Below the pieces are notes generated by a model. It searched no databases and had not been told where the DNA came from. It saw nothing but the letters and a program-made list of their open reading frames with translations. The position numbers and the translations under genes were made by a program. A DNA stretch of 55,652 nucleotides from positions 1 through 55,652 of the forward strand of contig NIVC01004201.1 in assembly GCA_002269645.1 (NCBI GenBank), written 5' to 3'. Source of the DNA: Macrostomum lignano. Lineage: Eukaryota. Of the stretch, positions 41,889-43,795 are shown piece by piece; position 1 is the first letter of the stretch; every line of letters begins with the position of its first letter.

Positions 41889-43795
41889 ATGCGCGCCATC
41901 ACTCAGTTGCTTCTGGTCAGCTGTCTGGTGCTGATCGCAGCAGCTGGTCTGAGCGAGGCCTGCCTAGCCCGTAAGTGGAGCCGCTTCGATTGACCTGTTT
42001 CGAGTTTAGGTATATATACGAGCTATATATATATATATATATCCGATTTTCCTGATTTTTTTTTTGAAAAAAGAGACTGATTGGGTGGGTGTCCAATGTA
42101 TGAAAAGTTGAAGGAAATCAAAGGTCAGAAGGTCAACTCCGCCCTCTCTATCCACACTACGAATAATCAACTCCGCCCCCTCTATCCACACTGCGAACAA
42201 TCCAATCCGCCCCTCTATCCACACTGCGAACAATCAAATCCGCCCCCTCTATCCACACTGCGAACAATCCAATCCGCCCCCTCTATTTACACTGCGAACA
42301 ATCAAATCCGCCCCCTCTATCCACACTGCGAAAAATCAAATCCGCCCCCTCTATCCACACTGGGAACAATCCAATCCGCCCCCTCTATCCACACTGCGAA
42401 CAATCCAATCCGCCCCCTCTATCCACACTGCGAACAATCCAATCCGCCCCCTCTATCCACACTGCGAACAATCCAATCCGCCCCCTCTATCCACACTGCG
42501 AACAATCCAATCCGCCCCCTCTATCCACACTGCGAACAATCCAATCCGCCCCCTCTATCCACACTGCGAACAATCAAATCCGCCCCCTCTATCCACACTG
42601 CGAACAATCCAATCCGCCCCCTCTATCCACACTGCGAACAATCCAATCCGCCCCCCTCTATCCACACTGGGAACAATCCAATCCGCCCCCTCTATCCACA
42701 CTGCGAACAATCCAATCCGCCCCCTCTATCCACACTGCGAACAATCCAATCCGCCCCCTCTATCCACACTGCGAACAATCCAATCCGCCCCCTCTATCCA
42801 CACTGCGAACAATCCAATCCGCCCCCTCTATCCACACTGCGAACAATCCAATCCGCCCCCTCTATCCACACTGCGAACAATCCAATCCGCCCCCTCTATC
42901 CACACTGCGAACAATCAAATCCGCCCCCTCTATCCACACTGCGAACAATCCAATCCGCCCCCTCTATCCACACTGCGAACAATCCAATCCGCCCCCTCTA
43001 TCCACACTGCGAACAATCCAATCCGCCCCCTCTATCCACACTGCGAACAATCAAATCCGCCCCCTCTATCCACACTGCGAACAATCCAATCCGCCCCCTC
43101 TATCCACACTGCGAACAATCAAATCCGCCCCCTCTATCCACACTGCGAACAATCCAATCCGCCCCCTCTATCCACACTGCGAACAATCCAATCCGCCCCC
43201 TCTATCCACACTGCGAACAATCCAATCCGCCCCCTCTATCCACACTGCGAACAATCCAATCCGCCCCCTCTATCCACACTGCGAACAATCCAATCCGCCC
43301 CCTCTATCCACACTGCGAACAATCCAATCCGCCCCCTCTATCCACACTGCGAACAATCCAATCCGCCCCCTCTATCCACACTGCGAACAATCCAATCCGC
43401 CCCCTCTATCCACACTGCGAACAATCCAATCCGCCCCCTCTATCCACACTGCGAACAATCCCATCCGCCCCCTCTATCCACACTGCGAACAATCAAATCC
43501 GCCCCCTCTATCCACACTGCGAACAATCAAATCCGCCCCCTCTATCCACACTGCGAACAATCCAATCCGCCCCCTCTATCCACACTGCGAACAATCCAAT
43601 CCGCCCCCCTCTATCCACACTGCGAACAATCCAATCCGCCCCCTCTATCCACACTGCGAGTCATGAAATGTCTCATCATGCTCAAAGTCAACTCCCGCTA
43701 CCCCCCCCCCTCTGTCTGCAGCCATACTCGGTGCGGTAGGCGGCAAGCTGCATAAAATTATAGCAAAGAAGATCAAGTACGTCATCAAAGGCTGA
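41889..43795 (+). CDS. Two-exon secreted cationic peptide precursor (41889-41970 + 43722-43795, 51 aa); antimicrobial-peptide-like
   Basis: Signal MRAITQLLLVSCLVLIAAAGLSEA; GTAAGT donor and polypyrimidine-TGCAG acceptor, both phase 1; mature CLAPILGAVGGKLHKIIAKKIKYVIKG*. Confidence 0.75.
42135..43660. repeat. 34-bp intronic minisatellite (CCGCCCCCTCTATCCACACTGCGAACAATCCAAT)n, ~45 copies
   Basis: Fills most of the peptide gene intron. Confidence 0.96.

Follow-up and report, generated by a model that had tools for sequence, protein, structure and literature searches.

A two-exon Macrostomum lignano gene for a small secreted cationic peptide of candidate antimicrobial character

Contig NIVC01004201.1 of the flatworm Macrostomum lignano (assembly GCA_002269645.1), analysed on its forward strand over all 55,652 nucleotides (the window), raises the question of whether two short exons at 41889-43795, separated by a long repetitive intron, encode a genuine secreted antimicrobial peptide (AMP). 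A preliminary description made from the letters alone had proposed an undescribed antimicrobial or cytolytic peptide at this place. We are highly confident that the gene and its small, cationic, secreted product are real: it is an expressed, lineage-restricted, two-exon gene for an ordinary small secreted peptide. The function is a tentative assignment. A secreted, probably amidated, membrane-active defence or cytolytic peptide has close to, if somewhat short of, an even chance of being the right description. The gene model and the AMP-like call had both been public before, which limits the discovery value. New in this analysis are the tandem A/B pairs, the conserved splice design, the variable intron minisatellite, the gene-conversion signature and an unannotated B copy, together with two reservations, one about the signal cleavage site and one about the lower amphipathicity of paralogue B.

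Gene structure and RNA-derived annotation

Positions 41700-44000 were read and spliced in silico. The open reading frame (ORF) starts with the ATG at 41889 and ends with a TGA stop at 43793-43795, and the spliced coding sequence (CDS) of 156 nt encodes a 51-residue product, MRAITQLLLVSCLVLIAAAGLSEACLAPILGAVGGKLHKIIAKKIKYVIKG. Exon 1 ends at 41970 before the donor CCC/GTAAGTGG (CCC/GTAAGT); it carries the codons for the signal peptide (MRAITQLLLVSCLVLIAAA/GLSEA/) and for the beginning of the mature product. The acceptor at 43721/43722, ...CCCCCCCCCCTCTGTCTGCAG/CC, consists of a C/T-rich tract followed by CTGCAG/CC. The GT...AG intron is 1,751 bp long and interrupts the frame in phase 1. The exons, product and canonical phase-matched splice of the preliminary description were exact; the annotated gene range is identical and the structure is kept in four further copies. 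Its intron of about 1.75 kb filled with repeats is equally borne out by a 34-bp × 44.7 tandem array within these 1,751 bp.

Read without splicing, the exon 1 frame meets a stop after 34 codons and that of exon 2 opens no earlier than 43667. Prokaryote-style ORF lists therefore miss both exons. The earlier statement that the gene is hidden from ORF finders applies to such lists only, whereas transcript-based annotation and MAKER/SNAP found the gene or its paralogue.

A homology search returned a single cluster, whose 51-residue protein, annotated as 'hypothetical protein BOX15_Mlig009903g2' of Macrostomum lignano (PAA48227.1, PAA91343.1, UniRef A0A267GZ83), is 100% identical to the spliced product. 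The annotated gene range on NIVC01004201.1 is 41889-43795, which equals the coordinates found here, and the gene is therefore already annotated. According to the genome paper, the GenBank annotation was built from a transcriptome assembled with guidance from the genome: StringTie/TACO was applied to RNA-seq, de novo transcripts were mapped in addition, and TransDecoder called the ORFs. Because the annotation derives from the transcriptome, the intron rests on RNA evidence. In the older, independent ML2 assembly, MAKER/SNAP arrived at this two-exon product for a paralogue. The identical annotated entry, together with a structure shared by four further copies, is beyond chance.

The 200 nt upstream of the gene were aligned with MAFFT among the four distinct copies, and the blocks conserved between paralogue types may belong to the promoter or 5′ untranslated region (UTR). 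No canonical TATA[AT]A was found upstream of the gene. The 3′ flank common to the paralogues, a putative 3′ UTR, ends with CATAAATACATTGCTATTAGATGTACAATTGTTTTGCTT at 44055-44093, and no canonical AATAAA or ATTAAA was found in it. Feature coordinates are collected in Table 1.

Database searches and a published AMP-like listing

A HMMER profile built from three proteins retrieved only itself from 1.84 billion representative proteins, and a word-indexed search of 5.8 billion clustered proteins gave two candidates, of which its own cluster alone remained. The precursors and mature peptides of both paralogue types matched no Pfam family at E<=10, Melittin and Cecropin included, and no chain among the PDB sequences at E<=10. 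Rfam identified no RNA family anywhere in the window. Judged by sequence, the family is an orphan in the libraries searched, and the peptide lies outside every curated AMP sequence family in Pfam.

The product has nevertheless been listed before. Irvine et al. 2023 (PLoS Pathog 19:e1011508, PMC10414684) searched WormBase ParaSite proteomes, those of the two M. lignano assemblies among them, with SignalP 4.1, ProP 1.0 and 11 AMP predictors. Their S5 File contains BOX15_Mlig009903g2 with the exact sequence as 'Ungrouped' #538 and gives the predicted 32-residue peptide GLSEACLAPILGAVGGKLHKIIAKKIKYVIKG. For #538 the file records a signal ('Y'), leaves the ProP column blank and gives 90.9091 as the score, which corresponds to 10/11 positive predictors; the meanings of the columns are taken from the methods text of that paper. 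The same file lists #536 (Mlig003473g1), #537 (Mlig003880g1) and #479, the MAKER/SNAP model from the ML2 assembly. The word 'undescribed' in the preliminary description therefore fails, as the protein is annotated in GenBank and UniProt and was already an AMP-like peptide in this file.

The prioritised fAMP-LP groups of PMC10414684 required that >50% of the 11 predictors be positive and that sequelogs (BLASTP of at least 100 bits) occur in more than one genome. Entry #538 has the predictor share (90.9%) and lacks the multi-genome sequelogs, and a 32-mer cannot reach 100 bits. The lack of a sequelog reaching 100 bits in some other genome led to its removal from the prioritised set, and it was never synthesised. 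In a search of literature full text, neither the gene identifier nor the peptide sequence was printed in the main text of any paper. A recent review describes AMP work on free-living marine flatworms as 'still in its early stages'.

Tandem paralogues and gene conversion

The four further gene copies form a tandem A/B pair at each of two other loci. On NIVC01000089.1 (stretch L002), a second A copy is 100% identical to the window over the CDS and 300 nt upstream and has an intron of 490 bp with ~8 repeat units. A B-type paralogue, uncalled in the annotation, lies 5.2 kb downstream of this A gene at L002 11193-12098. Its product, MRAITQLLLVSCLVLIAAAGLSEACLAPIFGAVGGKLHKVIAKKIKKIKFRG, carries an L30F variant and ends in ...PIFGAVGGKLHKVIAKKIKKIKFRG, and its splice design is the same as that of A. 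This B-type copy is absent from the cluster members as well as from the called genes. The second tandem A/B pair, on NIVC01000237.1, consists of P0002 (Mlig003473g1) and P0003 (Mlig003880g1). A tblastn search found no second copy of the gene within the window; the expected B partner would lie beyond the contig end because a 10.5-kb insertion displaces it. The near-identity of the window and L002 copies fits the known redundancy of the assembly, for which the genome paper reports 180 Mb in blocks at least 95% identical and a DV1 line with extra chromosomes.

All five copies keep the donor CCC/GTAAGTGG, the acceptor CTGCAG/CC, phase 1 and the Gly-stop, over intron lengths of 490-1,751 bp. Exon 1 differs among them by 0-2 of its 82 nt. 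Between A and B, 1-5 nt differ in codons 1-46 (96-99% identity), with 0-3 synonymous and 1-2 non-synonymous differences. Identity in the upstream and intron flanks is 65-72%: the 300 nt upstream are ~71% and the first 150 nt of the intron ~65% identical, and the 3′ 300 nt are ~79% identical. The last 5-6 codons differ (YVIKG in A, KIKFRG in B) and are offset by an in-frame 3-nt indel; both tails are basic and hydrophobic, and despite their divergence a Gly codon directly precedes the stop in every copy. AMP gene families typically show tandem duplication and a conserved signal followed by a cationic tail that diverges.

Leu8Phe (CTT to TTT) and an ATT codon for Ile16 are shared by the A and B copies of one contig (L003 10001 and 13718) and are not present on the other (L002 6001 and 11193). 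The flanks instead follow paralogue type, A pairing with A and B with B. This pattern points to gene conversion of exon 1 between the tandem paralogues.

These comparisons bear on whether the transcript encodes anything that works. The copies are too similar for selection to be measured, they carry a gene-conversion signature and sit in a region saturated with satellites and mobile elements, and no homologue outside the species appeared in either the 1.84 billion representative or the 5.8 billion clustered proteins. All of this would suit a transcribed, taxonomically restricted ORF without a functional peptide, a young orphan or noise whose copies resemble one another through gene conversion and recent genome duplication. 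We consider such an ORF improbable, since A and B are 20-35% apart in their flanks and intron, yet the intact ORF, the phase, an indel that stays in frame and the Gly-stop are all kept. The promoter-proximal and 3′ blocks are conserved too, and the coherent design of a signal followed by a cationic helix was recognised by 10/11 predictors.

The intronic minisatellite

The array in the window intron contains 30 exact consensus units, and those of the other copies hold about 8, 15, 16 and 28 units. Its retention in both paralogue types, with ~8 to 45 units over all copies, indicates that the minisatellite is older than the A/B duplication and very unstable. The 34-bp unit is C-rich on the sense strand, has a GGGGGCGGA box on the opposite strand and is free of stops in every plus-strand frame. 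The lack of stops gives rise to a spurious 552-residue ORF at 42081-43739, which was rejected as coding since the repeat period is not divisible by 3 and the ORF does not share the frame of exon 2.

Signal peptide and physico-chemical properties

The precursor has n-h-c organisation, and small residues occupy positions -3/-1 of two candidate cleavage sites, AAA/GL and SEA/CL. SignalP 4.1, as run by Irvine et al. 2023 (PMC10414684), called a signal ('Y') in BOX15_Mlig009903g2 with cleavage after Ala19, not Ala24. The preliminary description had set the signal at 24 residues; the published site falls five residues earlier, and Ala24 also obeys the -3/-1 rule. Depending on the site, the mature peptide would have 26-31 residues after removal of the terminal Gly. 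The last 27 residues contain six Lys and no Asp or Glu, as had been described. Cleavage at Ala19 yields GLSEACLAP..., a 32-mer including Gly that retains Glu23, so the absence of acidic residues depends on the cleavage site. The net charge is +6 counted from Cys25 and +5 from Gly20.

AlphaFold2, given a 3-sequence alignment, models a single helix over residues 2-50 with a mean pLDDT of 71. The continuity of this helix, a hydrophobic core (LLLVSCLVLIAAAGL) long enough to span a membrane and the disagreement between the Ala19 and Ala24 sites would suit a small membrane-anchored protein, in which an uncleaved signal anchor holds the Lys-rich tail at the membrane surface. An anchored product is very improbable in our estimation. 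SignalP 4.1 was built to tell signals from membrane anchors and called a cleaved signal, both sites have small residues at -3/-1, and a single N-terminal basic residue precedes a signal-typical h-region.

For a secreted peptide, length, charge and hydrophobicity fall within the range of linear AMPs (about 12-50 residues, net positive, roughly 40-60% hydrophobic). The 26-mer from Cys25 (without Gly) contains one His and has a mean Eisenberg hydrophobicity of 0.26. Its hydrophobic moment (μH) peaks at 100 degrees with a value of 0.41, which is reached by 2% of shuffles. The same calculation gives 0.35 for melittin, 0.46 for magainin 2 and 0.36 for pleurocidin, a range that takes in the value of the flatworm 26-mer. 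The 15-mer that follows Gly-Gly, KLHKIIAKKIKYVIK, has a μH of 0.65, reached by 1.9% of shuffles.

Proposed function

Alongside the observed gene structure, conservation, RNA-derived annotation and physico-chemistry, we infer the cleavage site, amidation, membrane helix and activity of the peptide, as well as its place and time of production. The N-terminal signal would be removed in the endoplasmic reticulum after Ala19 or Ala24, and the C-terminal Gly would be used by peptidylglycine alpha-amidating monooxygenase to leave a Lys-amide. In the secreted 26-31-mer, a Gly-Gly hinge would connect the hydrophobic segment at the N-terminus (LAPILGAVGG) to an amphipathic helix rich in Lys (KLHKIIAKKIKYVIK). 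The helix is predicted to bind the membrane and the hydrophobic segment to insert into it, so that the peptide would bind and permeabilise anionic membranes, as melittin and host-defence or cytolytic peptides of the cecropin type do. A disulfide-linked dimer may form through the single Cys.

Several results weigh against a membrane-active peptide from this gene. The exons of the window and NIVC01000089.1 copies are 100% identical, so RNA-seq reads cannot separate the two. The exons of the copies are near-identical even at synonymous sites and L8F is shared within one locus; because this pattern points to gene conversion, exon conservation overstates purifying selection. With no homologue of any kind in the libraries searched, nothing is transferable by homology. 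The 31-mer from Gly20 carries Glu, and its whole-length μH of 0.29 is attained by 8% of shuffles. Amphipathicity is lower in paralogue B, with a μH of 0.30 for the whole peptide and 0.48 for the part after Gly-Gly, reached by 21% and 16% of shuffles, respectively. The amphipathic, AMP-like character proposed in the preliminary description thus holds in silico for copy A, by the predictor vote and by both μH values, and is weaker for the 31-mer and for paralogue B. The AlphaFold2 model carries little weight, as it covers a 51-mer and was made from three aligned sequences. Among 20 synthesised AMP-like candidates in PMC10414684, 8 were active and 12 inactive, and with 12/20 inactive the functional claim is a prediction with roughly an even chance.

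A secreted, amidated peptide need not be antimicrobial, and the evidence above was also weighed for a signalling molecule (neuropeptide or hormone-like) or a gland, seminal or mucus component. Both paralogue types retain the signal peptide and the Gly before the stop, and a cut at the internal Lys-Lys pair could possibly release IKYVIK-amide or IKFR-amide. Flatworms use many amidated peptides. M. lignano is described as having many small, fast-evolving reproductive secreted proteins. Such a role is unlikely in our judgement, though it deserves weight. The precursor is atypical for a neuropeptide in having neither a spacer nor an acidic pro-region and in lacking KR/RR sites; it has the C-terminal Gly donor and lacks flanking convertase sites, as its KK pairs lie only inside the helix. 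The hypothetical C-terminal products released at KK would be wholly different between the paralogues, no known peptide family is resembled in Pfam, and ProP 1.0 predicted no propeptide site, if the blank S5 column carries the meaning given above. The gene did not appear in the portions of the published M. lignano expression, positional and reproductive-candidate tables that were searched, an absence that carries no weight.

It is possible, at a probability noticeably below even, that the A/B pair comprises the first linear, amidated, melittin-like membrane-active peptides from a free-living flatworm. They would be species- or genus-restricted innate-immune or cytolytic effectors of de novo origin in which gene conversion homogenises the gene and only the cationic tail diversifies. 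Free-living flatworms are almost blank for antimicrobial peptides. As M. lignano allows transgenesis and RNA interference, an in vivo test of such peptides would be feasible. Once validated, the peptide would be a new scaffold and would make the role of a linear AMP in the living animal tractable.

Comparison with known peptides

The candidate membrane-active peptide resembles melittin of honeybee venom and similar linear cytolytic peptides. Melittin also has ~26 residues, a hydrophobic N-terminal half with Gly, Ala, Val and Pro, a basic C-terminal end and a similar μH (0.35, against 0.41 here). The melittin precursor likewise ends in a Gly, which is used for amidation. Unlike melittin, the flatworm peptide has no Pfam Melittin match at E<=10 and no acidic pro-region removed stepwise, and it is not the product of a venom-gland gene.

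Cecropins (those of insects, nematode cecropin P1 and the anisaxins) likewise place a linear, Lys-rich helix-hinge-helix peptide after a signal. In insect cecropins the C-terminal Gly is an amide donor, and cecropin genes have one intron each and form tandem clusters. Their basic amphipathic helix is N-terminal and their hydrophobic helix C-terminal, whereas the flatworm order is reversed and there is no Pfam Cecropin match.

Halocidin and dicynthaurin of ascidians are linear helical AMPs with one Cys that forms an intermolecular disulfide. They offer a lead for the role of the single conserved Cys25, but share no sequence similarity with the flatworm peptide, and Cys25 adjoins a candidate signal site and could be mere c-region context.

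Among flatworms, mesco-2 of Mesocestoides corti and fAMP-LP-5 and fAMP-LP-17 of cestodes are also small, cationic, secreted precursors that contain no known domain, and they came from genome mining with signal-peptide and cationicity or machine-learning filters; #538 stands in the same S5 list as the fAMP-LPs. These three peptides were synthesised and are active, come from parasitic cestodes and have no sequence similarity to the M. lignano peptide, whose activity is predicted only. The mesco-1 and mesco-2 genes, unlike the present one, are intronless. The helminth defence molecules (Fasciola FhHDM-1, Sm16) are secreted flatworm peptides with a C-terminal amphipathic helix as well, but they are trematode-specific, larger (about 8-16 kDa) and immunomodulatory, and are reported to lack antimicrobial or cytolytic activity (PMC3708846). 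No homology between them and the M. lignano peptide was found in the profile and Pfam searches.

Feature coordinates

Table 1. Coordinates of the peptide gene and of other coding fragments in the window
Feature	Position	Strand	Basis or detail
Upstream blocks conserved between A and B (putative promoter / 5′ UTR)	41715..41832	+	MAFFT alignment
Upstream block	from 41715	+	TTAACTGAAGAATG
Upstream block	from 41741	+	TTTAGTCCATGGCAGAGACAGCAGTGATTAAGTTCA
Upstream block	from 41801	+	TTTTTAATCTGC
Upstream block	from 41814	+	TTCGTGGTGAATTACACTC
Exon 1 coding part, Met1 to base 1 of codon 28	41889..41970	+	In silico splicing, copy comparison
Phase-1 intron, 1,751 bp	41971..43721	+	Donor and acceptor shared by the five copies
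Intronic minisatellite, 34-bp unit TCCGCCCCCTCTATCCACACTGCGAACAATCCAA × 44.7	42138..43659	+	Tandem Repeats Finder, 97% matches
Exon 2 coding part, ...PILGAVGGKLHKIIAKKIKYVIKG and TGA stop	43722..43795	+	In silico splicing, copy comparison
3′ flank common to paralogues (putative 3′ UTR)	43796..44093	+	Alignment
Other coding fragment	667-1095	-	
Other coding fragment	3468-4514	+	
Other coding fragment	13268-14494	+	
Other coding fragment	35171-35698	-	
Other coding fragment	39278-40765	-	

The 10.5-kb insertion and neighbouring sequences

The 10.5-kb insertion occupies 44132-54667, and its start lies 336 nt past the final base of the TGA (43795). It is flanked by a 6-bp target-site duplication, ACTGTG, at 44126-44131 and 54668-54673. 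The NIVC01000089.1 copy, otherwise 97-99% identical, lacks it and has the empty site at L002 6977-6982. The insertion appears to be recent and polymorphic. Its termini, ACTACGTAATGCG...CGCATTACGTAGT, belong to inverted ends of ~370 bp that include 58- and 84-bp tandem repeats. Lying ~40 nt past the conserved 3′ block, it might, judging from its position, affect 3′-end formation of the window copy.

Within the insertion, ORFs encode an rve integrase (48649-49722) and a weak P-loop match (53152-53721), and some eight further ORFs matched nothing in Pfam, PHROGs or the PDB. In layout the insertion resembles a Maverick/Polinton, but these three databases gave no capsid, protease or polymerase match that would place it in that family.

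Satellites with 14-35-bp units fill much of 22-44 kb and generate many long spurious ORFs. A 14-bp unit, AGACTGGCACTGAG, forms an array of about 414 copies over 5.8 kb and is accompanied by a short array of its reverse complement (intervals 22379-23278, 23886-29683 and 34477-34840). Between the 14-bp array and the reverse-complement array lies a signal-bearing F5/8 type C (galactose-binding-like) ORF at 31349-32386.

The neighbouring ORFs are unrelated to the peptide gene and comprise WSC, retroelement RNase H, LicD, F5/8 type C and, on the minus strand, protein kinase and ankyrin. The other coding fragments of Table 1 correspond to a WSC-domain exon, the RNase H of a non-LTR-type (non-long-terminal-repeat) retroelement with an upstream ORF resembling reverse transcriptase, LicD-family exons, a protein-kinase exon and an ankyrin-repeat exon. 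The minus-strand protein-kinase and ankyrin exons possibly belong to one gene, and the ankyrin ORF continues into a 15-bp satellite.

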